The position numbers were made by a program, and so were the translations under genes. A DNA stretch of 63,525 nucleotides, filler included, from Lenisia limosa (taxonomy: Eukaryota; Protista; Breviatea), in NCBI GenBank assembly GCA_001655205.1. It is 12 parts of 12 records of this genome, joined end to end, with 100 filler letters (N's around TTAATTAATTAA, not from the genome) between each part and the next. Parts side by side here need not be neighbours in the genome. Positions count along the whole stretch, not along the records: positions 1 to 17,076 come from LPNZ01003003.1; 11 more parts are not named here. The stretch is one strand, 5' to 3'. The notes below the pieces were generated by a model. The model was not told where the DNA came from. It saw only the letters and a program-made list of their open reading frames with translations, and did not search any database. Positions 1 through 17,076 of this stretch are shown piece by piece. Position 1 is the first letter of the stretch. The number at the start of each line of letters is the position of its first letter.

Positions 1-59
1 AGGGAAATGTTTGCTAAAACCGCAAAATGTTCAAATATATAACCCAAAGTCAACTTCGT

Positions 60-1639
60 TGTGCCAGGAAGCAGTTTCCAAGGAATATCGCGGTATAGCG
101 TCGAAGGCATTTCAAAACATTCCATAAACGTAGAGTTCACAACAACATGCCAGAAAGCAAAGCAATAACACAAACCACTGCAGTCAAGAAAAGCACGAAA
201 GCGTTTGCAGTGTAAAACACCACAATGTGTAGAAATGAGAAAAAAAAGGAAGTAGATAGACAATATTCAGAAGAACTAAGGCAAATACAAATCCCCAAAT
301 CCAAATATAAAACGTCGGAGTATATGATAGGGAATTATCTAGCATACCGGAATGTCGGAGTAATACGACAAGGAGTTCGTCCGAAGAACAAAATACCGCT
401 TCTTCCAGTTGCTGAATTTGTGGCCTTGACTGGATCGTCAAACAAGATTAATAACAGTATAACATTCTTTTTACTCTTTCCACACAAAAGATACTGAAAA
501 ACCTTGAGGTAACCTTTCACCCCCACCCCCCAGGATTTCCTCTACGAAAAAGTGCTGTCCGAAATGGTGAAGATCGGACTTAGCGCTATTCCCCATATTT
601 GCCGTGCCCAAGCGGGAGGGGAAATAAATATCTTAGATATTGATAAATCTTAAGTCTTCGAATAAATACGAATATTTCCGATAAATGGTCGATAAACCCT
701 CAAAATGTGTTAACTGTATCCCTAGATGCGTTTCGTATTTTATTCGTTTTAAAACACCAAAATGACCCCCTCACTCGCCTCTCTTCCACAGGAAGTCTTC
801 GCGGTAGATTTTGTTAACTACAGGAGAAGCAAGGTTCTCTTCTTCCATATCATTTTCATCCTTAACCATAAGCAAAGTTGCTGTGTGTATAAAATCTTGG
901 ACTTCAGTACGGTCCGAAAAAGATTGGTAAAATATTGGTATTTATCGAGGATATATCGAGAAATCTTTTCTCTTTCCTAACAGTGTAGCAATGATTAAAA
1001 CCATATATATTAGTGTGCAAGATAAGACAAAAAAATTAAATGAAGTTCAGAGGAGAAGCCATAATGCCAACAATCCCAACACAGCCAGCATTTACTCAAC
1101 AATTCGATAATCCCAACACAGCTAGCATTTACTCAACAATTCGATAAGCTCCCTCAACATATTTCTCGTACATTTATACAGATTACAACGTAAAAATTAA
1201 TTGTTTGTTTTAAGGAGATTCTAACTTGTGTATCAGGCCGAAACTGTCAAAAACAACCATGTTCATAAAAGCCATCCATTCAAATAAAAAAAAACACCAT
1301 TCATTTGTGACAGGTTCAATACTTATTATCAGCTTAAAAAGATTAACCAATCTGTTACATCGAAAGAATTGTCAAAAGAGGAAGCAAGAGATCACCCGAA
1401 GACCCCCTTCCCACCTCGTTTTCATCCTCATCATTGTCATAAGACACCTCCACTGCGCGGTCAGTCTTGTACTGCCGGTTGTAGAACCGCTCTCGGGACA
1501 ATCGACGCACAATATCGCAATTGTCTGTTGGTCCGACAGGGAGCTTCTCGGCCACCATAGTCAGGCCCCTCTTCTGCGCTCTTGACTGTGCGGCATTGGA
1601 ACCCGTTGAAGAGGTTGAGCCTCTCCTTCCACTGTCCAT
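60..1639 (-). CDS. PH-domain protein (multi-exon, runs off the left edge)
   Basis: Exons 817-779 and 424-348 splice in phase to IYREDFLWKRGHKFSNWKKRYFVLRTNSLSYYSDIP, the N-terminal half of a PH domain. A further exon near 60-110 reads AIFLGNCFLAQR. The likely first exon is 1639-1443 (MDSGRRGSTSS...RQYKTDRAVE); its linkage to the PH exons is inferred. Confidence 0.7.
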
Positions 1640-2319
1640 TCTTCAAGACCTTTTAGGTTTACCGGTCACATAGTCGTCGTTATCATGTAACTCTTCGATA
1701 TTCAAATGTAACCTATGAATATTCACAATTTTAGTGGCATAAAAGGGCATAATGCAGGGCTGCCTTCCCCTTTTTGTTAATATGCGGCGGCGCGCAGTAT
1801 AGATAGATATATACATGTATGTATCTGTAAGATGACTATAATATATTATATTACATATCATATGATTATCATATATCAGATATGATACATATGTGGTTCA
1901 TGTGGTTATAACTACACAGGCTAGATATGGTCCAAGTAGAGCTGTCAGCTATGGATAATAAGAAGAAATTTGGTTCAGATACCGTTGTTTAATATTGTAG
2001 ATATTGTTTACATTCTCTTTTATTCACCTTCTAATCCATCTTTCAATTCACACTCGCAGACTTGGGGTACCTGGCCTTTCTGCTTATCAAGACCACCGAG
2101 AAATGATCCGAGTCGATTGGACGATTTGATTACCCTATTTTGAAACTGCTTCTTATTTCAACCAGTTGGCAGTGAATATCATAACAATCTCCATGTATAG
2201 TATATTAGGAGAAAAGGAACGAAAACGAACATTAATACTACGGATTTCATATTTTTTAGTGAAGGTCATTGATGATGAATATATACCTTTGCAATGGTGA
2301 GCGCCAAACTTTAGCATGA

Positions 2320-2755
2320 TTTTCATAGAAAAAAACATAACTGCATTTGACAATGAAAAGAATGAAAAAAAAACCAAATACAAATTTAGAGAGTTTAAAT
2401 TAAAGAGCCCAGCCATCATCGTCACCAATATCGTCGTCAATTTCCTGGATAATAAGAATATTAAGAAATAAGGACTCAACAATAAAATAGTAACTGGAGA
2501 ATTGTCTGTTAAAGTTGTGGTTATTTGTAATAATCGCAAAGACAAAAAACCCAACCCCGTCTGAGAAATCCACGTCATCAAGTTCCTCGAGGCCTGCTTC
2601 TCGCTCCGGGATCTTCTTCTTCTAAGTAGGGTGAAAACAAACAAAAACTTTTTTAAAACTTATGAAACAAAGAGCGGGGCTTCTTCTTCTCAGGAATTGG
2701 GAAAACAACATATTCTTTTCATTGTCAAATGCAGTTATGTTTTTTTCTATGAAAA
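2320..2755. repeat. 44-bp perfect inverted repeat pair (2320-2363 and 2712-2755)
   Basis: TTTTCATAGAAAAAAACATAACTGCATTTGACAATGAAAAGAAT and its exact reverse complement. Confidence 0.9.
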
Positions 2756-5700
2756 ATAAAATATAAACAATATGATATAGCATAATCAAAATACATCCAT
2801 ATCTTCATCAAGTGCATTGTGGAATGAAACAATCAGGCTGAGTGAAGCCCTCTAATTACAGTAGAAAGGAATATAATATTAGCATTGGATGACAACGGCT
2901 CCTTCAGTCGAAAAAACATAATTTTAATTTTAAAATATATTATACTGTCTTTTTTGGACAATAGTGATGATCTCCTCATCCCATTCCATCCTACCCGGAA
3001 GAAGCCAGATTTCCACAGGACGCATGCGACAACGAAGACGCCACCACCAGCTCCAAATGCCTGGTTCCTGAAGAGACGTCAAATAGAAAGAAGATGCAAA
3101 ATAATTGATATCCAGAAGTGGTGAAAAAGAGTGGATTCAAAATTGAGCTCTGGAACCATTTTGTATATTTCGAGAAATCCCCACCAGTTGAACGAGTCGT
3201 CTGTTTCTTGTTCAAGAGCAACTGAAGGGGTAAAATGGGGTTATGGAGAAATTGGAAACATAACACTTTTGAATAACAATAAGTGTGTGGAGAAATTCTT
3301 AACGAGGGATGAATCTAAGCGCCATATCAAGTCGAGGTAACGATAATATGTTGATAATAAGAAATCACATTATTCACCAGGGAAAAGGGAAACAAACAAA
3401 CAAACAAATACAAAATTGATTGTCAGCCCCCAATCCTCAATAATGGTCCAAACCAGGTTGCGGCGGGTTAGTCGTGTCCGTTCCAAGAACTGTCAACTCC
3501 TCGGTCCAAAACGCGGTTTCCGGATAGAGTTCACTGGCAATGCAAGTCGCGGCGCCACCGACCTGATATTGTCAATGATGACGAAAATGAAGGGTTTTGA
3601 TCGGATCATTTCGCTTTCACTGTTTGGGATCGGTGATTGGTATGCACAAAGAGCCACGGATCAAAGGGACAGTTCTGAGAAGACCCTTTCCTCCCCTCTT
3701 CCCTCCTACTTATGAAAGGGATAGCATGGGGAGTGTTGTGAACCAAAAACGCACACATAAAAACAAAACAGAAACAAAAACTATTGTAAAAACAGTCAAC
3801 ACCATCATTTCACATCTAACAAAAATATACAGTTTTACCCATTACCCCCACTGTGAAGACGCGATCCGCCTCGGTGGTGAAGTCAGAAATGGTCACAGAC
3901 AGTCGTTTGAATACCTGTTGGCCAACCTACGTCGATCAGGAAAGTGTTTGATGGAAGACAGTGAACCAGGAAATGAAAGGCGCTTGGGGGGTCATAATTC
4001 AGAAAGTGTTTTAAGGCTATGTTAGAAAACTACAGAATAAATATAGACGTACACTACATAGATCAATTCAAGTAACACTGTGATAGCTCATCATATTTTT
4101 ATTGATGTATTTTTGTGATCACCCACAAATATCTTCTGCACGTCGCATGACAACAAAAAGATGTCATCGTATTCTGAGAGGAAAGGCCACTCCTTGCTGG
4201 TAACTGGAAGCTGAAAGGCGGTAAGTAAACATATAATATGATTGTTTCAAATTGAATACAACACTAAAAGTAGGCGCTGAACTACGTATGCAATGAAATC
4301 CTACATGGGTACAATACTGTGATTGTTGCATGGATGTACATGAAAGAGCATAATATGATATTACATAGATGAGGAGAATACGATATACTGCCTTCCATGG
4401 TAGATGCTAAAGGTGTGTGTTTCGTGTAAGTTGAGTGGGAATAACTGTATGGGTTTTATATGGCGACGTCACTTATATTGTCCGTTGACTAATACTGCAC
4501 GCGAGAAATATAGGGTGATTATCATACATAAGTAGAATAGCATGAATCACAAGAGTGACGGGTGTATTTTGTCAGTGAAAATTCGACCAGAATTTAATCC
4601 TGGTCACTATGATTGAAATAAAAAATAAATCACACAATTGTTTCTCAACAGGTATGACGCTGTTGTCATCCCTTACCTGGTCAGAGGACGGGTTGGCAAT
4701 GAAGCTGCACCACGGGTGAAGAACCTGAAGGACATCAAAACTTGCCCATTTTAGGATATAAAAAGGCATTTTCACGATGGCTGGGGGATTTCTTGAATGA
4801 CAATGCTATCTTCATCAGACAATAACACGAAGGAAGCACGTCACATCACAGAAGTCCCAAAACTTTAATATGCCGGAAACTGTGTTACTTTCAAGAGCTT
4901 CTCTGTAGCTTCACAGCCCCCAAGGTCGGACCTGTAAATCGGTGACCACGGGTATGACGGCGGAGGCATTGCCCTGAAGATGGTCGACTGAAAGCTGGGC
5001 CGCGGACCCGCTGAAGTGCACAATCGCGTGGTCACTGTGAGTTAATGTAGAGCGATGACTTGCATAATCCCGTGATCACAGGAATGGGATGAACATAATC
5101 AAGGAATGACAATGACATGTTGAAGTGTGTAATGGCGTAATCACGACATACCACGAACTGAATAGCAATGAAGATTAAATACTTTTCGGATATTTTAATT
5201 TTTATATTATTGAAGTGTCCCACCAAGTACTTGTCGGGATGTCGAACTCATCAGTTTCGAAGTCGCCAAGGCCAAGGTCAGGGTTGATGCGCTTCGGGCC
5301 GTTCTGGAAGATTAAGCAGGAAAGACAAATAGACAACATAAATATTTCACAAGAAGTACTTAAAGAATAACGTTGGAGAAGATACGTAATACGAAAAAGA
5401 GCTTTAGATTGTGGAACACCATATCTGCTTCTCAATAACCGATGTTAGCGTTGTGCACTGACCTGGATGACAACAGAGTACTGGAGGGAAGTTGACGGAG
5501 GGACCTGTGACGCGTTAGGTAAAGAAAAGCTGAACAAGAGAAAAAGAGCGGAGTGATATTTTTTAGAACTGTTGGTTTGTATGTTTATGATGTAGCTATA
5601 TGATAGTATTTTTTTTTTATATAATTCATTACATTGCTATATTATTATTTATTCTTATTAGTTTACTATCAGGGCATTCGAGATACTATTTATAAGGACA

Positions 5701-8700
5701 CATTATTACCACAAGCATTCTCCATCCCACCTGGCTCCACGGTGCACTCGAGATGGTCAGGCGAAGATCGACAGTCGCCGCTGCCGCCTCAACAACCACA
5801 GTTACGGGACCGTTGTTAGAAAGGTCCTGGGGAGGTTAACAACAACAACAGCAACAGCAAACATGCAAATAAAAATAAGCACAAAACAAAACAAAACAAA
5901 ATAAAACAAAACAAAACAAAACAAAACAAAAAAAAAACAAAACAGCAAAAACATAATTGCACACTGGATCTTTGTGAAGAGGGATGATCTCTGACACAAT
6001 CGAGTAGTTTCCTAAAACAGTTAAACAAGCAAAGTGGCATACAATCGCAAAGTACGTGTGATCTCACAATATAATCAAAGTTTTCGATGTTTATGCTGAT
6101 CTAGAGAGGGTATTTTCCGAATTTGCAAGTAGAACACCCCAACTCACATGACATATGATAGAGTATGAACTTATCTTATCCGTCCACCACTTGGAGAAAA
6201 GAAGTCCCATACCAACAGCAGTAAACTATGTGCTTTTCCCCATATCAAACAGCAGACACGCGAACTGACACATAAACAAACATACACCACCAACAACATC
6301 ATGCCCTAATCCACCCACCACTGGGGGCAAAGAAGTCGATCGTAGTTGGGATGTTAACCGACACCGAGGCGTCAACCTTCATTTCAGAGGTACTAGAAGG
6401 GGTGAGTGTTTACATAAAACTATGGGGTGTGGGCAGCTACATATTTCGGAAGTACTCAATATGATGAGGGTTAACGTCACATAGACACTATTTGGGGGTA
6501 TGTTTGATGGCCAATAATTCAATACATGATACGATATCATGTATTATTTCAGGAAGACGGAGTGTTTACATTTTATACGAAAATATAGGGAAGAAAACCG
6601 GAAATTTTGGAGGTATTGGAAGGGGGTAGCTAAGGATACTTCCAAATAAAGTCATAATTTTACCGAAGGAACATAAAATAACTCGTGCTTTCAGTTAGGC
6701 TGGAAAAATATGAACAGTCTGTAAAATTACTGGAAACAATTCTGGTGCGTGTAAAACCCACGTGCATATGACTGTGTGGTTTGAAGCATCGAAGAACTCG
6801 CAGGAGCCTTCCAGTTCGCGGCCATTGTTGGCGTTCTTGAAGACAGCCTGAGGTGGATGAGGGATGAATTGATGAGGGATGGGGGTATGGTGAATGCTGG
6901 GACAGGAAATGGACAAGCTAATATTGTATCTATTTTTGTATCAAAATGGGGAAGAAAGAATGGTTGAGTGACGTTGGGAGGATGAAACATACATAATATT
7001 AACTTATTCTGGATTATGGTTTGACAACGCCAAAAAGAGACACAATGAAAACGACCAATCCAACCTGCGAAGGGTTGACGATCAAGAGGGGGTCAACCGT
7101 GACGGTCAGGTTGCAGGAAGCAGGGGATGACATGGGGCGGAAAGAGTTGCCAACGTTACGGATGAAGACCTGATGAGCGTGAACCGAGTGAATTTGGACG
7201 ACTGGAATGCATTACAACTTTACTGTATGCATACATAGTGCATACTTATAGCCGCATTATTATACTTCAATCCCCCTTTCTTTTAACTTCCGTCGTTCAT
7301 ATCTGAAGCTCAAATGCATCCCAATCCTGACCTGAGTTTTGAAGGTTTCACCTCCGATGGGGATGGTGCCTGTTGCTACTGTGGTTGACATCTATAGAGG
7401 TCAATGGGACAGAACAAGGGACGTCATCATAAAGGGAAAGAGAACAAAACAAATCGCATTAACTTAATAAAAACAGAAACAACAAACAAGAAAACTTCCA
7501 CAGAGTTAATGGGATCTCTTACCAGTTCTAAGCTGAGGTCGGACTCCAAAATGACATCGATCTGGGCCTACAACTGGTTAGCCATGTATATGATCAAACA
7601 ATACGTTTACTCATCTTTTGTATTTATTTCAATTATCAAAAATGTAAAAAAAACTTTCACTTGCATTATTTCACCACATGCAATGCTATGCATTTAGCAT
7701 GTATGTTGCAGCAAACCGTGTCGGTGTTATCGGAGGGGAAGGTCTCGGCAATAGTGCCGTACACGACCGCAGCGACAGTCGGAGAGAAGTCAGGCTATGC
7801 GCGTGAGAGGGTGTATAGGAGGATCAGTCTGACTCAACCATTATGAAACAGATCAAGCACCAGGATTCAGAAAGAAAAAGACAAAGAAAATAACATCGTT
7901 TTCCCAAGGGTATTAAACGGGAAGTCTTGACAATACCTTCAAGGCAGTTTTTGAGGAAATTGAGAGGGTCCAGTACTTCGAGGGAGGCAAGATTGGCACT
8001 GGGCAGCTGTAGACACCATCCTGAGAAATCACTACTTGCACTACTTGCACTACTTGCACCCGCCGGAAACAGACGGCTTTGAATTTCGTTTTTGGAGAAG
8101 TTGGTATTATTCATATTATGTGTTTGTACGAGAAATTGTGAAAATCGCAATAAGTATAACACGAACATTACACGACAGCCACTTTGCTCCACGGCCCTTT
8201 CCCCCACCAGTTCGACACATATCGGGGGGTTGATACTCGATACGGTGAGGCCCTCGGGAATGGTGACGTTCAGTACCGCGGCGGAGTCAATGGCGGGCCC
8301 CTTGTTGATCACTTGGATCTACGAGGGGTTAGAGCGGAAGCAGCCAAAGAAATTATACAATAACAATGTTGGAGTTTCCCAAAAAATAGAAATCACAAAA
8401 TATGATCAAGAAAGGAACAGAAGCCGAGTCACCACGTCTGGGAGGGGTTGGAGGCAATTTTAAGAGGAAGAGAACGCATGTACATTGAGCGTGGAAATCT
8501 GTCCCTTGGTTTCAAGAATGCCATTCAAACTAGTAAGTGGGTTGCCTACCTGGAATTGCGCCGTTTGCCCGGAGTAGACAGTGGTAGCGATGGGCGATAC
8601 GGAGACGGAAATATCAGTTTCAGCCGGGTGGATCTCCGCAATCACAACCAGGTTGTTGTTACTTAGGTCCGTGTCGGTATGGGGGGAGATCACTGGGGGT

Positions 8701-11700
8701 GTAAATAGACTTCAGAGAGCAAGACAAATGAAAAATAATTCAAAGACCGAAAGCTATTTTGATGGTACACACGGAGTCGGTGGCGGCAGTATATGGTGGG
8801 ATCACTGGGGAACTCAGGAAACAGAAAAAATCACCCCCCACTCAAAGAAATCACCCCCCACTCAAAGTGAAAGAATTAACCTACGTGGCTGACCACCGTA
8901 ACAAGTAGCCCAACAGTAACCTACGTTCTCCAAGGATGGTGACATTTCCACCACTATGGGCTGGCGACACCTCACACGGCACCGACAGGAGCTGGGGGGT
9001 CAACAAATCGGAAATTAAACACAACGATAATTTTATGTCATAAATCTTCGGTGTGAAGTAATCAACTCCACATTACAGTCGAAGTGTGACTTATGAATAA
9101 TCATAAACAATGCACATCAATTTACGGATTTCTAGTGGATATCATAACATGTGTTATTATCTGGGTTACCTAACATCTCAATGTGAAGCGTGACAAATAC
9201 TATCATCCACGTAATATTTATTTGCTCAACATTGAAGACAGTGTTTGAAGCCAACCAGTTCAGTTTCAGGCTCCATGACAGGCATGATGCAGCTAATTTC
9301 ATTGGCAATGAATGTGCAGACTAAAACGATCAAAATGGTGGAGTTTGATGGATGTCACTAAAACGACCAAAGTGTAGGGGGAGGTGTGATGAAAGTGATC
9401 AAAATTTGACAGACGGTTCTGAAACAAAACAAAAACAGTCATCCATAATAAGGTATTAAACCTCCATATCTCAGAATATTACCGACCACGTATCATTTTA
9501 CAGACCAATGTGAAACCACCTCTCACTTTTACTGTTATTATCGTTGCCTCGGTAAAACTATGGTCCAGTCGGTTAAATTATTCGGTATTTGGTAATCAAA
9601 CTCAGCATACCTGGTGGATCTTGAGGGAGAAGATGGGGGAGGAGTTGCAATCTTGCATCTTCAATAGTTGCTGTCACCTGAGAGATGAGGAAAGAAAAAG
9701 CAAAACCCCAACAAAATGAATTCCGAATCACTGTTTCCACTCTCAATCAGTGCTTATTGTGCAAATTATCTTAATATAGAGGGGGAAGAGGTGGTACCAA
9801 GCAAAATGTGAATCGCTTGAGATATGGATGGCCTAGATCTGGGCTCCTTCTCTTTCTTTCTTGTTTCCCAGTGTGTTCTTCTGATTCTGATTCTTATGGG
9901 TCCAGAGAGTTTTTGGACAGGAAATATCCCTTGAAAAGTTGCTTCAAAACGCACACACATACACATCGAATCGACCTCTCGCTATAATGCTGCTCAACAC
10001 CCACATTATCGGGGAGTTGGATATTGATGGTCGGGGCACCAGGGGACCTTATAGCTGAGAAGGGGGTGTGGTGATTCGACACAGATGCGGCCAATGTGAA
10101 CTGTAGAGAGGCAAGGATCTGGAAAGCGGTAAGTGCAAAAGATTGAGAGTGACATCAAGCAGAGAAGAACATTTAGGTTGATGTTCAAGTGTTCTCTCGG
10201 TTCCATAGGGTTTTTCTGTCAATTTCCACATGAGTGGAAATGAGCAATCATGTACGAAAATGATGCCAAAGCGTGACATGATGGTGACCCAAACCTTTTC
10301 ATATGCGCTATTGGACACGAGGCTCTCGAAACGGAAGTCCGACTCCCATTTGACCTCAACGGTGTGGCTGGAAAGGTGAATACTATCCCCAGTGGATGTG
10401 TTTGTAGAATACAGCGGCTGGCAGCAGATTGGGAATGCATTAGTTGTGAAGAAAAGGGGATGTGTATTGTGAATACTGTGACCTGCATTCAATCACAAAT
10501 GTTTCCGAAAGGTGAACACGCTGAGATTTAAGTTACAGTGCACATAATACCCACTTTTGTCTGTTGTTACTTTGTGTGTCATCCGGCACACTGCTTTCGA
10601 CCCATCCGTCAATAGCCAAATTGCCGGTAAACTCATCAATTACCTTGAGAACAAATCTGAAGTGTGATTTAAAAATCAGAGAGATATACGGAATGATGTG
10701 AATCTACGTTGATATGTTGCTTCAGAAATGCAACACCCGCATTCATAATAATAAAAATAATAATAATGGAACAATTGTCCAGCAGGCCACCACCCACAAA
10801 GCGCGGTAATCCTCGGAAACATCCAGGGGTGGGATGGGGCAGGAATGGAGATCGTCAATATGCCTGAAAAGTCAGGACTGTAAAGAATGTTCAATGATGA
10901 ATGAAAGAATATATTAGCAAAATATAAAATGAAACGATGATCATCTCCTACACAACAAATATGAAAACGCTTGCATCCATATTAGACAATTTTCCATCAG
11001 GTGATCCCTACGTGCAATTGTCATTCGGCGTGGTAACGATGGAAATCTCAGGAGGAAGCTAAACCAGTGAGACAACAGAAAACAAAACAAAACGGTTGTG
11101 TGAAGGAACACGAGTGAGGAAATCACAATTGTGAAAAAAAAAAGAGATAATAACAACGAAATTATGTACTTTACATTTCGTACGGCCTCACTTGAGTCCA
11201 AAAGTAGGTCCATAACACTTGACCTACCTTGAGAACCACTCGTGGGTTGGGGTCTAAAGACGGCCCACTCGACGCCGCCACAAGACCCGCTGAGAAGACT
11301 TGGCCTAAGGGGGTTAATGGAGAATACTTGTTATGAAGGTACATGTATGTATCAGTGCTACAGAGATATGTGTGTGCTGAGGTGGGCTATGGACTTATAT
11401 TGCGTCAACGAGGTGGAACAGAAAATAAAAGGAGAAGAGTTAATGCAGAATAATAGGCTTGCTTTGAGTCAAACGAAAGTTTTTAGCCTATGTGTGTGTG
11501 TGTTGTCGTGGAGGGGGGGGGGGGGAANNNNNNNNNNNNNNNNNNNNNNNNNNNNNNNNNNNNNNNNNNNNNNNNNNNNNNNNTTATGGAGGGGTTAATT
11601 GATGAATCCAGTCAATTTTTGGACAGAAGTGAAGAAGATCCAACCCGAATAGAGAGTTCCCGGAGATGCGAAGAAGATGACCAGGTCAGTGAAGGGCGAC

Positions 11701-14700
11701 GAAAGGGTCAGGGTGTCGGACATGGTGTTGGTATCAGGACTAAAGGGGATAAGAAAGACGATGAACCAATTGAAAAAAAAATAAAATAATAAAAATAATT
11801 AAAAAAAAATAACAACAAAGTTTAAGTATCCACTTGGGGGTCAGAAAGTGACTGGCATCATGAACTAATAACAATGAGATATAAATAATATTCATTTATA
11901 AATACAATGTGACTGTCTGAAACCCACAGTAGTTCCCTGGCATCTGAGGAAACGGTTGCAGTGTTGGTCAATGTTCCCATTTGTGCCGTCGGATCCGTCC
12001 GAGCAACAATAGTCACTTCCTTGACTTCTTCTGAGGGGCATGAAGATGATGGGTGATACGATGAAAAATTATAGGATGTGCAATGACCTCCTATACTTCG
12101 TCTGATGGGCATGTAGGGGAGGGCGATGGGATGAAGAAACAACAAAACTTAATAGCCATCGATTAGATGCCTCACGATATAACGACGAAATACAATTATC
12201 AATCTGTTTTAATAGCAATGTCAGATGTATTTTGGTACAACTTCATGACCCTCAGCTCACCCGGGTTAATTGACTGCAGGAGGCATGTGACGGTGTTGTT
12301 ACCGCTTTGGAAGCAGCGAACTTCAGGATCAGGCGTCTGCAATGGTCAAATGAAGATGAACCAATATACCAGCGAATATAAGGACTAATACCATGTGGAT
12401 AAGTATGGTCATACGTATGAGTGGGGGAAGACACTGGAGAAGGTGACAGGTCACATCAATCCAGTATTCTTTGTTTAGTTCTTACCATAATAGATACAAA
12501 TTTAGTTTTTCCAGGAAGAGGGTCTTGGACAATCACCTACATGATGTCAGAATAATAAATAATACAGAAATACTTGATGTGATTACAGCAAACACTTCTA
12601 CGAGATCATAGATATAAACAATACTTCATATCTACTTCATATCTACATTGATGATTCCAGTTCAACATGAATTACGACATCATGTTACGAAAACGTTTCA
12701 AATGTAAAATAAATATAAAGCATAAGATATTTAGACTATCAAACAGAGGAAAATACTTTCCAGATTCCCCGCGTACATTCCTCGCGAGAGATGGTCCGTG
12801 ATTTTCTACTGCAATGGAGTAGAACACGATATCTCCGCCGACAACAATGACGTCCTCTCCACCGCCGGTTTGCTTGGGGGAAATCGCCTAGACAGATGTA
12901 AACTGAAGAAACGAGCAAAATGAGGTGGCAAAAGTGCAAAAAAGACCAACCTAGCAATAACACACAAAAAGTACAGCAGAAACGCAGCTGAAAACAAGTA
13001 CATTTACACACACACAAGGATGGTGTTTCCAATAAAAATGGCCAATCAAGCTTGCCACAGATAATTATCATCCAGCACCAACCTTATCAGCAACCCTCCC
13101 CCAAATAAAAACATATTTATCAAAAGAATACAAAAAAATAATTTGCCACCGACTCTCATGAGAATGGAGACGTCCGCCGCCACTTCCGTTGTTGTAGTGA
13201 TTGTGACGTCGTTATTAGAAGGGACGATGTCAGTCTGAAGTATGGTTAGTATGGTCATACAAAATAGGCAAAGAAAACTATATTCAGAAACATTAAATAA
13301 TAATTGGTGGAACAAAAGGGCCATCGGGTGAAAATGGAAAAGCAATAACAACAATGACAGCCAAGATAAATAGGTGGTGTATGTAACACTAAGGCAATTA
13401 TGGTAACTAAGAGGCAAAAAGAGAGGTAATTAAAATCAAGTAAATGCAGTATTGCAGCTTTGTCGTACCGAATCCGCCGCAATTGTGGCATTGGCAATAA
13501 GGAGAGAACCATCAAGAAGGGCTGCGTCAGAAACCACCTTGATTGACACCTGCGCGATTGTACCCTTGTCAATCTACAGGAATTAGTTTTTTTGGGAGGA
13601 AGTTCGTTTTTGTTAAGTCAATAATTACCTTAAACACGCCAGGCGAAGAGTAGTCTCCAACTCCGCATGAGACGGAGGCACCAAGAGACTCACATGTGCC
13701 TAAAGAAGTAAGACGTTAACAAGACTCGTCCTCAGAACAATTTACATAATGATGAGCACTTGAACAATGGAATATCATGCATAATTTCTTTGAAATGATG
13801 CATTCAATATGTATGGAACAGGAATGCTTTTGAATATTATTCAAAAGGAATAAAAACGTCAACAACAGCCCCATTGTGCAAACCATTCGGGGTCGCAAAA
13901 GCGGAAACGAAAGTTAACCCTTCAGGAAGGTCAAGGTCAAGAGTCACATTATACGCTGGGAGAGTAAGTAATGGGTGGCTTATCAGAAACTAGTGTGTGT
14001 GTAATATGCTGTCTTTTCTCATCAATGTGCATCGAACCAGCAAGACATCGCAAAACAACAACATTATCAATCCCATGACGTACCATCATTGAGTCCTTTG
14101 TTTGCGACAACAAAGAGGTATTCGAATGGCTTGCCGGATAACACCTGGATGACAAGAATGTGAAATAAGTCAAAAATCAGGGTTACAAGGATATGAACAT
14201 ATCATCTGGGGAAAATTGAATCGGAAGACTACCTCCACAAAGCAAACATCAAAAAAATCAAACAGATGATATGATATGTCCACAAACAGCCTGGTGGAAT
14301 ATAATCCGACCCCCCCCCCCGCAAACTGTTTCAGTTGCAGATTGCCCGTAAAGTGAAAGGTCAATGTCCTTGTAAATACTCCATGAAGCCTGAGTCGTTA
14401 AAACACCAAAAATGCCACACAGCTGCTCAAGCATCAGAAAACGTCTCAGAAGAAATGGTTGATTATTCATCATATCCATGATTTCAATGTGTTCAATGAA
14501 ATACTTTCCTGAGTTTACCCCCCCCCCCCNNNNNNNNNNNNNNNNNNNNNNNNNNNNNNNNNNNNNNATGATAACTGTGGCCTGGATTGTCAAATCATGA
14601 TATTGTAGCAAGAGTAAATGAAAGCATACTATGAAAAATACAGAGGTCTGATATAAGGCATCTAAAATTAGATAATCAGGCAGTTGGTCGACCAAATACA

Positions 14701-17076
14701 CCAGAAAGATATTGCACCATTTGCCATACCTCCGCGGTTCTTGCGCAGTCCCATGTCGGCTGAAAGTCCAGGCTCAGACTGAAAATCGAGCCTCGAATGA
14801 GTTCAGGAACATCGCACGTCATCTGCTGGGGTAAAGCGGAGACATGGGATGCTCATTTCAAGTCGTGAAGAAAAAGGTAAGAGACAACTGCTCTCGTGCT
14901 ACCTGAATTACCACAATATGTGTAGGACACAGGACACTGGAAATTTATCTCAAAAAATATCTGATATACATTACAATTCCACCAGTACGAACAGGACAAA
15001 GATATTTGCAGAGGATTTATATCAATTAAGTCTTCGTACCGAAGCGGGCCCCGCTTACCATGAATTCGCAGGGTTCCACGCCACATGCAGTGATTGCCGA
15101 ACACGCTCCACCGGTTAAGGGGAAGTGGGCTGGTAAGTACACCTGGGGAAAAGGGGGAAGTTTGAGCCAACAATACCACCATGTATCTGCTCATTAAAGC
15201 CAAAACACACATCACTATGTGCCTGGTTTTCAGACTGATAAACCCATCACAGTTTCCTACAGTGACAGGAGCAGCAGCGCGACTCAAGGGACCGGCGTTC
15301 CGTACTATTACTTCCAGATGGGCGGTTTCTAATGGCAGAAGCTGAGTCGGACCTAAGGGGTAATATTGATAGTATGAAGAGCATGTGGGGTCGAGGGGTA
15401 TGTGTTGTGGGGGGATGGCTATGATAAACAACCAAGCAAGCAAAAACCATAATCATGACACGATAGTGATCTCCATTCAAGTGCGCTGCTCACTTGCGAT
15501 AGGAACGACAGACAGGTCTCGCCTCGCAGTGATGTTCAAACTAACAGACGCTGTGTCGTCCAAAGCTCCGGTCGGGTCAGTGTTAGGGAGGCCAGTCTGG
15601 GGTATTATAAGTATTCCGCAGTTGACTTTTATTGTTGTGTTAAAATTCAGAGGATGACCATAATTTTGTGCATTTTAAGTATTCGAAAGTAACATAAACA
15701 ACAGAATGAGTCTCTCCACTTCACTCCATGTTGACCCAGAGACACCAAAGAGTATTTACTGCGATATGACACAGATTGCTAGCTTCATACGATAGTAAAA
15801 ACGGCCTCGGGTTGGAGATTGTCGCTCTCAAGGGTGGTCTCAATCTGATTGTAATTATGGAAGAGATGATGTGTCTCAATGGTCGTTTTTCTGTTAATTA
15901 GGGAAATCATATGTTTAATTTCATTCATTGTATTGAAAAACCTCTTGATCGGCGGCCCTTAGTCAACATACCACAAAGAAGACGCTTGTTGACTGGGAGA
16001 ACAGGACCTCGATGTTGGGTACGGAACAGGTCATAATATCATCAGCAGTGGTGGCGAGGGCTGGGGATTCCACTAATGTTGCTGGGGTACAATAAGTCAA
16101 AGAGTTACAGTGAAATAAAAAAACAATAATAGATTAAATAAATCAAATCAATTAAGCAACAAAAATTAAAATCACAATAATAATAACAATCACAACCTGA
16201 TGTGTTTTATATTTCATTACATACAATGTAGTTCATTCCTGAGTTTACCCCCACTCCCCACCATTACTGCAGATGCTGTTTGGGATGACGGGGTGTGACG
16301 ACGGCGTTTGGATTTGGACCGAAACAAACGACACGGAGCTTCCGGGGAATGATGCCCCGAACTGGAAACTTCCTGAGGGAATCAATTCAGGAAATGTTTT
16401 CGATATAATATGTGTTTTCATTTGCACGGCCCCTTGGGGTTGGCATATAATAACGAAGTGAAAATGAAAGTGTGTAATATAAGTGCGGATTAAAGTATAA
16501 TTTCCACGAACCGGAGTCGGAAGGACCGTTGTTCTTGATAGACACCGTATACCTAGGGGCGTGAAAAGGGCTGGTTGAAATGATTCATTCGGGCTCTCAT
16601 GATTTCCTGCCTGAGAGTTTGCTGATTGGTATTGTAACGAGTATCATATGAATGAGAACACCTTATCCAAGGGGATTCAAAAACAGTCATCTCCCTATCT
16701 CTTTATCTATATATGTATATCTCCCCAATCTGATGTTGCTCTTTCGCCTGGGTTTGAAGATTTAATTTTCTATTTTATAGCTGTGGGAATTTCCAGCTTA
16801 CACCCCCAAACCGCAAGTTATTGGCGTTGAGCGGGTGTGTCGCGTTACCAACATTGTAGGGGACGACGACCGCTGATAAAATCTAGGAGAATCAAACAGA
16901 TGGAAAAAGAGACAACGAAAGTTCCGGTAGACGATTTCCAAGTCGTGTATTATATCATCATCCAAAAGCTCATAGAATCAAACATCAGTAAATTGGGGTA
17001 AAAAAGGAACAGGGTTTAAACCCAGAAGTATTGACATCAGCGGTGGGAACGAAATCAGTTCATTTCCTAAATGAGC
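2400..17076 (-). CDS. Giant type I membrane protein with about 9-10 DUF11/Ig-like repeats and an integrin-alpha-like TM/cytoplasmic tail (5' part missing at contig end)
   Basis: Roughly 40 exons carry recurring DUF11-type motifs: YTVSIKNNGPSD (~16540), FYSIAVENHGPSLARN (~12790), DLPEGLTFVSA (~13910), TDIVPSNNDVTITTTTEVAADVSI (~13200), TLTNTATVSSDA (~11960), IQVINKGPAID (~8310). The last four exons splice in phase to ...SFNWNQAFGAGGGVFVVACVLWKSGFFR|KKKIPEREAGLEELDDVDFSDG|EIDDDIGDDDGWAL*, with TAA at 2402-2400. Confidence 0.75.

Follow-up and report, generated by a model that had tools for sequence, protein, structure and literature searches.

An integrin-alpha-like membrane hinge and tail on a putative DUF11-type stalk in a candidate surface receptor of Lenisia limosa

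Integrin alpha chains are known by a seven-bladed FG-GAP beta-propeller with Ca-binding loops, by a leg built of thigh, calf-1 and calf-2 domains, and by heterodimerization with a beta chain. How a protein that ends like an integrin alpha chain, but carries other domains outside the membrane, should be read is the question raised by a gene at the start of a 63,525-nucleotide stretch of the breviate Lenisia limosa (12 parts of assembly GCA_001655205.1 joined end to end with filler, hereafter the window), in the piece that spans positions 1–17076 and comes from record LPNZ01003003.1. An earlier note on this DNA had offered two readings, an integrin alpha with a greatly stretched leg and a DUF11 adhesin whose tail is of integrin type. 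The reading tentatively favored here, at somewhat less than even confidence, is that of an adhesin with a DUF11 stalk and an integrin-alpha-type membrane, hinge and tail module that would act as it does in integrins; we infer both the homology of the module and its mode of action.

The piece (GC ~0.40) holds a single long gene on the minus strand, split into very short exons and extending past the 5' edge at 17076, so that only the 3' end of the receptor gene lies inside it. When public sequencing runs were mapped over 2250–8200, RNA run X1 yielded a 1394-nt contig (depth 29) from which 15 stretches are missing, among them 2445–2555, 2622–2994, 3068–3184, and 3222–3453, all 15 of them bounded by CT and AC on the plus strand and hence by GT and AG on the minus strand. 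DNA run X2 covers the mapped stretch with none of these joints, which identifies the RNA contig as spliced mRNA rather than carried-over DNA, while the splice-end letters fix the minus strand as that of the gene. A further RNA joint (5826/5965) also falls within the gene. Joined from 7169 down to 2400, the exons form an open frame of 389 codons that closes at a TAA stop codon (2400–2402); the RNA contig stops at 2406, the final Leu and the TAA being read from DNA alone. The gene is expressed, and its exon structure over the RNA-covered part and its C-terminal sequence are established.

In this frame the protein ends in ...AFGAGGGVFVVACVLWKSGFFR/KKKIPEREAGLEELDDVDFSDG/EIDDDIGDDDGWAL and the stop codon, where the slashes mark introns 2622–2994 and 2445–2555; with the upstream residues included the joined end reads ...NWNQAFGAGGGVFVVACVLWKSGFFR/KKKIPEREAGLEELDDVDFSDG/EIDDDIGDDDGWAL, and the last 60 residues are NQAFGAGGGVFVVACVLWKSGFFR/KKKIPEREAGLEELDDVDFSDG/EIDDDIGDDDGWAL. 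A W-K-S-G-F-F-R motif, encoded at 3015–2995 and continued as K-K-K after the intron, stands at the inner end of the sole membrane-like segment, 36 residues before the C-terminus. The segment itself, AFGAGGGVFVVACVLW, is Gly-rich and contains a GxxxG element (G-A-G-G-G) in its outer half, as the alphaIIb membrane helix does. The chain is acidic before the hydrophobic run (EQETDDS) and carries 5 basic residues within the 9 that follow it, beyond which the tail, with 15 Asp/Glu among 42 residues, continues as an acidic stretch of ~32–36 residues ending in GWAL. The protein's 16 N-x-S/T sequons and 25 Cys residues are without exception N-terminal of the membrane segment, and none is in the tail. 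The predicted topology points to a type I protein with one C-terminal membrane segment and a short cytosolic tail. The in-phase splicing string given in the earlier note is thus matched letter for letter by the RNA joints and the open frame, and the RNA-spliced frame confirms the LWKxGFFR motif with its added basic residues, the membrane segment and the acidic tail; the accompanying caveat on a short membrane segment is upheld as well, the run of 16 residues being ~3 residues shorter than that of alphaIIb in a Protein Data Bank (PDB) alignment. In alphaIIb/beta3 structures, 2knc among them, the GFF residues of alphaIIb are buried in the membrane, and burial of the same kind here, by analogy, would lengthen the embedded stretch to ~21 residues.

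The letters of the motif are themselves rare in this DNA. Translated in six frames, the piece contains W[KR].GFF a single time, against 0.009 occurrences expected by chance from piece composition, and 0.0001 when two extra basic residues are required. A degenerate DNA pattern (two NTN codons, of hydrophobic type, followed by WKxGFF, an MGN codon for Arg or Ser, and GT) was also run as a control over the whole JGI metagenome collection, and found in 36 places, each with stops or without a hydrophobic run just upstream. Since all 36 metagenome matches lack the membrane setting, chance can give the motif letters, but not their membrane context at the end of an expressed giant surface protein.

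Resemblance to integrin alpha chains extends beyond the motif. In a phmmer search of the 60-residue membrane and tail stretch against 177,635 distinct PDB sequences, the sole match was the integrin alphaIIb membrane/cytoplasmic peptide 2knc_A (E 0.65), in an alignment that spans ..LWKxGFF.. (query segment fvvacvlWKsGFFrkkkipere). The tail was also compared with human alpha tail peptides (PMC8748766), excluding the GFF letters that had triggered the finding. The residues after GFF align with those of human ITGA10 (KKIPEREAGLEELD against KKIPEEEKREEKLE) without gaps and at an equal offset from GFF, with a score of 37 (KKIPE.E) that is reached by 3 of 20,000 shuffles of this gene's tail and by 29 of 20,000 shuffles of the ITGA10 tail (p 1.5e-4 to 1.5e-3). 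ITGA11 provides a weaker match (REAGLE vs REPGLD), one residue out of register (offset 7 here and 6 in ITGA11), and the ITGA1 and ITGA2B tails show nothing past composition in the same comparison. Furthermore, an intron lies directly 3' of the motif (GFFR/KKK, phase 0). The A and B tails of mammalian alpha6 derive from separate exons and have GFFKR alone in common (PMC2132821; PMC5930856), and alpha6 must therefore have an intron at or beside the corresponding site, a coincidence worth ~1 in 10 given ~1 intron per 25 codons. With the in-register KKIPE.E and the alpha6-like intron site, the resemblance to integrin alpha is stronger than had been claimed.

Outside the membrane, the protein takes a different course. 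Its outer part was reconstructed with a splice-chain model (dynamic programming, its site matrices and codon scores having been learned from the RNA-confirmed exons), with a by-eye change at 12777–12887 and RNA depth bins for 7332–8318. The ~1,270 outer residues in the piece comprise ~8 recognizable repeats, R1 being cut off, and ~200 unassigned membrane-proximal residues. In an alignment of ten segments, the repeat units measure ~105–150 residues and share the core ..DLs....v..G....y.i.v.N.GP..a..v.v...lP.gl..vs...C.......v.C......, ending in ..N.A.v......D...NN. Self-BLAST of the model protein pairs none of the repeats at E up to 1, and the units would hence be old and divergent. A hidden Markov model built from R3–R8 gives R1 and R2 higher scores than 2,000 shuffled sequences (one close exception aside), and fails to recognize the last two segments, R9 and R10 (model residues 1065–1261). 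Judged from the predicted protein, the outer part is a tandem repeat array. Most of the R3–R8 repeats (exons ~13699–6762) have a conserved pair of Cys residues, C-x(6-11)-C, ahead of the domain's second half (GTC..VSC, VRC..VTC, PIC..YSC, GSC..VIC), which suggests one disulfide per domain. N runs at 11528–11583 and 14530–14567 fall inside the gene, and the adjoining units R2 and R5 look incomplete; exons may be missing there.

Scans for known families were made exon by exon, each repeat being divided over 3–5 exons. Six single exons, covering successive parts of the DUF11 model, gave matches, to DUF11 (PF01345) or its NCBIfam equivalent TIGR01451 ('conserved repeat domain') only and all of them sub-threshold (DUF11 at 15.6, 12.3, 14.4, 13.3, for exon 8208–8318, and 14.1 bits; TIGR01451 at 15.5 bits; cut-offs 24.6 and 24), and the two exons of R4 sum to ~28.5 bits against the DUF11 cut-off of 24.6. 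The ten best named Atlas neighbors of exon 8550–8690 are all DUF11/CARDB clusters (scores ~0.7, to be read as a lead only). Some of these clusters, of bacterial proteins, are also labeled 'Integrin alpha Ig-like domain 3', a hint that the DUF11/CARDB and integrin alpha Ig-like folds may not lie far apart. At the level of a hint, too, the stalk would be a DUF11-type beta-sandwich rod. The six membrane-proximal exons match no Pfam family at E up to 10 and no NCBIfam family, although single exons of 25–36 residues give such scans little power, and the Atlas neighbors of a membrane-proximal exon are noise only. No FG-GAP, Ca-loop (D-x-[DN]-x-[DN]-G-x-x-[DE]) or FG..GD-type motif is found in six frames of the 17-kb piece, and no exon matches Pfam FG-GAP. 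Because DUF11 and TIGR01451 are the only outer family signals, with no FG-GAP or Ca-loop motif and no match to an integrin leg (again from single exons, with little power), the visible part leans to the second of the two readings in the earlier note, the adhesin with an integrin tail. The earlier note's count of at least nine repeats was roughly right, ~8 being recognizable and the remainder consisting of the unassigned residues.

Under the favored reading of a DUF11-stalk adhesin with an integrin-alpha-type module, the gene product would be a large type I surface receptor that combines a non-integrin stalk with a membrane, hinge and tail unit of integrin-alpha type. Common descent or exon shuffling would account for the unit, or else identical selection would have preserved it. 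The Trp-Lys pair would sit at the inner leaflet and the GFF turn would pack back onto the helix, while the basic residues would form a clasp with an acidic residue on a partner chain or interact with cytosolic regulators. The GxxxG element would allow packing with a second membrane helix, and adhesion through a long stalk would thereby be coupled to an inner switch. The weakest step in this proposal is the expectation that the receptor has no canonical FG-GAP head.

Several observations weigh against such a reading. The hydrophobic run has 16 residues, and its Kyte-Doolittle mean over 19 residues, 1.45, is weak by the standard of membrane helices. At E 0.65, the 2knc_A match is not significant alone, and Pfam reports no family, integrin included, on the 60-residue membrane and tail stretch. 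The ITGA10 comparison was a targeted one between charged low-complexity tails, and correction for ~18 human alpha tails brings its p to ~0.003–0.03, which leaves the likeness suggestive and not proof. The strict cytoplasmic integrin alpha signature, KxGFFxR (IPR018184), is missed here, K-S-G-F-F-R-K having K for the final R, a conservative change; human ITGA10 (GFFAH) and ITGA11 (GFFRS) likewise miss it (PMC8748766), and the signature is therefore not universal among integrin alphas. The model protein, of 1334 residues with its N-terminus cut off, is predicted only for exons above 8318, and the head of the gene lies beyond the 5' edge of the piece, so that an FG-GAP propeller could still be encoded upstream. 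Furthermore, relatives were found in neither protein nor metagenome libraries: exon 3454–3562 had 0 matches among 1.84 billion protein representatives (a search whose length window excludes long proteins for single-exon queries), the 83-residue stretch 8463–8711 had 0 in a word-index protein search, an exact metagenome-contig scan for the membrane exon returned 0, and the degenerate pattern gave no relative. Part of this would also be expected if the motif were convergent or fortuitous, an ordinary aromatic/basic stop-transfer sequence on a DUF11-stalk protein with no integrin-like partner or switch, and if the ITGA10 likeness were compositional. The PDB match at this E-value, the empty Pfam result and the unmet signature all favor that account. 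So does the presence of K-G-F-F-[KR]-R in nuclear receptor DNA-binding domains, which shows that these letters can arise independently. Very many windows were scanned, moreover, so that rare strings turn up, the DNA pattern having appeared 36 times by chance in metagenomes. However, membrane context was present in 0 of those 36 matches, whereas here the sole membrane-like segment of an expressed receptor has the motif right where its helix ends, 99.85–99.985% of composition-keeping shuffles score below the in-register KKIPE.E match, and GxxxG is placed as in alphaIIb. We consider convergence unlikely, though far from negligible.

The opposite departure from the favored reading is a true but very divergent integrin alpha, with a seven-bladed FG-GAP head upstream, a leg expanded from three Ig-like domains to ten or more E-set (DUF11/CARDB-like) domains and an integrin beta partner. 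This is possible but doubtful. The W/K-x-G-F-F-basic arrangement right after a membrane segment is treated in the literature as an integrin alpha marker, unicellular animal relatives included, and added domains are described as highly variable among non-animal integrin alphas. The ITGA10-like tail and the intron position fit descent from an integrin alpha, and in the Atlas cluster names the same bacterial proteins carry both DUF11/CARDB and 'Integrin alpha Ig-like domain 3'. Against this stand the ~1,270 membrane-adjacent residues without an integrin leg family or FG-GAP motif, a membrane segment shorter than that of alphaIIb in the 2knc_A alignment, and the literature, in which searches on DUF11 or CARDB together with integrin found no such architecture, and no integrin alpha with a DUF11 leg, described. 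An artefact of wrong splicing, chimeric assembly or an untranscribed pseudo-exon is very improbable indeed. The scaffold has N gaps, and the last two exons are flanked by a perfect 44-nt inverted repeat, between whose arms an assembler could flip the sequence, but one RNA contig spans 19 exons, including the membrane exon and both tail exons, in the order and orientation of the assembly and with canonical splice ends, and the frame is open through to the stop codon. An assembly flip of the last exons was accordingly rejected, the RNA contig supporting the present orientation.

Comparison with known systems places the protein between several of them. Integrin alpha chains (human ITGA2B and ITGA10; Capsaspora, Ministeria and Pygsuia) are likewise type I proteins with a single GxxxG membrane helix, and have in common with it the Trp-Lys at the inner helix end, the x-G-F-F with basic residues and the short acidic tail, besides KKIPE.E at an equal offset in human ITGA10 and, in mammalian alpha6, an intron immediately behind the motif. 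They differ in the outer part, which has thigh and calf domains and FG-GAP blades where the visible 1,270 residues have DUF11-type repeats and an unassigned region, in the hinge, which is GFFKR and not GFFRK, and in a helix that is ~3 residues longer. The DUF11/TIGR01451 and CARDB surface proteins of bacteria and archaea, which form fibrillar adhesin stalks, share the tandem beta-sandwich repeats and the ..v.V.N.GP..a..v.v...lP.gl..vs.. core; the Lenisia gene, in contrast, has spliceosomal introns at ~1 per 25 codons, divergent repeats that are mostly Cys-paired, and a eukaryote-type anchor with a cytosolic tail. The nearest parallel for the hybrid of adhesin stalk and integrin tail is the Sib family ('similar to integrin beta') of Dictyostelium, whose members have a Gly-rich helix and resemble integrin beta chiefly in their C-terminal portion (PMC9197732). 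SibA–E are also non-animal type I adhesion receptors with an outer part unlike that of integrins, but they are beta-chain mimics with a VWA domain and two talin-binding NPxY motifs, whereas the tail here mimics an alpha chain and has no NPxY; by analogy, the present protein would be their alpha-side counterpart. Membership of the Sib family was itself considered and rejected, since NPx[YF] is absent from the tail and from every exon frame and the exons of the piece give no VWA match. A wider proposal, which we regard as speculative and improbable on present evidence, is that the integrin-alpha membrane, hinge and tail unit is a transferable module, independent of the FG-GAP head, which this organism uses on a bacterial-type DUF11 stalk and which pairs with a beta-like or Sib-like chain through GxxxG and the inner clasp and so constitutes a second, independently assembled 'integrin-like' two-chain adhesion switch.

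The coordinates of the gene and of the elements around its last exons are collected in Table 1. The eight exons between 3454 and 5826 encode the ~200 membrane-proximal residues (model 1065–1261), which are beta-rich and contain Cys, the first residues of exon 5731–5826 completing R8. Farther upstream, the low end of exon 7937–8020 was inferred, with a loose RNA end at 8021 that reads ...SINPPICVEL.

Table 1. Positions in the window of the receptor gene's exons and of nearby elements
Feature	Positions	Strand	Basis
Inverted-repeat arm 1, perfect 44 nt, in the 3' untranslated region	2320–2363		Logan contig depth of the arm 72.9 vs ~34
Last coding exon EIDDDIGDDDGWAL with stop TAA 2400–2402	2400–2444	-	RNA joint 2444/2556; contig to 2406
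Tail exon KKKIPEREAGLEELDDVDFSDG, basic cluster then acidic; both ends phase 0	2556–2621	-	RNA joints on both sides
Candidate alternative last exon (AG/KKKPRSLFHKF, stop), in frame after GFFR	2653–2688	-	Direct repeat 2613–2652 / 2680–2719
Inverted-repeat arm 2, in the intron after GFFR	2712–2755		Perfect inverted match to arm 1
Exon NQ-AFGAGGGVFVVACVLW-KSGFFR; membrane segment ~3060–3013, hinge 3015–2995	2995–3067	-	RNA joints 2621/2995, 3067/3185
Short acidic juxtamembrane exon, predicted outer side (..ALEQETDDSFN..)	3185–3221	-	RNA joints
Eight exons: 3454–3562, 3852–3926, 4127–4210, 4677–4724, 4932–5034, 5224–5303, 5463–5504, 5731–5826	3454–5826	-	RNA joints
R7–R8 exons: 5965–6011, 6319–6392, 6762–6847, 7065–7169, 7332–7391, 7523–7567, 7717–7794, 7937–8020, 8208–8318	5965–8318	-	RNA
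~30 predicted exons, six putative DUF11-type repeats R1–R6	8550–16872	-	Splice-chain model only

The two 44-nt arms, 348 nt apart, enclose both tail exons together with the stop codon and the 36 nt that follow it. The doubled contig depth of the arm is what the presence of two copies would give, and the repeat could form a long pre-mRNA stem or represent a recent inverted duplication. Between the motif and the tail exon, the candidate exon at 2653–2688 repeats the beginning of the KKK exon in degenerate form; its use would produce a short tail that recalls the A/B tails of alpha3, alpha6 and alpha7, and RNA depth is 0 in the bin 2648–2846 that covers it. The last intron (2445–2555), of 111 nt, is in frame and stop-free, and its retention would add 37 largely hydrophobic residues (VGFFVFAII...) to the acidic tail. 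Across introns 2445–7331, donors are mostly GTGGG or GTNGG, and not GTAAG or GTGAG, and in most of these introns a YTRAY branch-like element is found only 9–14 nt upstream of the AG. Exons average ~75 nt, with ~1 intron per 25 codons. An intronic (ACAAA)n microsatellite of 12.6 copies occupies 5881–5944, where the DNA and RNA contigs from both public runs are interrupted or masked. At the other end, an independent Logan DNA contig (~5908–17055) apparently ends, by its start and length, within ~20 nt of the scaffold end at 17076; the scaffold and Logan assemblies seem to break at one place, inside the gene. Downstream of the gene, a 37-nt unit is tandemly duplicated at 1072–1147 (2.1 copies, 97% alike), and no convincing gene, Rfam family or tRNA was found in 1–2250.

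The KxGFFKR hinge serves as a marker in the tracing of integrins to the single-celled ancestors of animals, and the association of such a hinge, a GxxxG helix and an ITGA10-like tail with what may be a DUF11 stalk would mean either that integrin alpha legs have been rebuilt more freely than thought, or that the switch is separable from the head. A separable membrane and tail switch, if true, would mirror on the alpha side what the Sib proteins of Dictyostelium present on the beta side. Either outcome would alter the reading of 'integrin' matches in protist genomes, and the Lenisia protein offers a concrete case in which the function of the hinge may be considered apart from the rest of the integrin.

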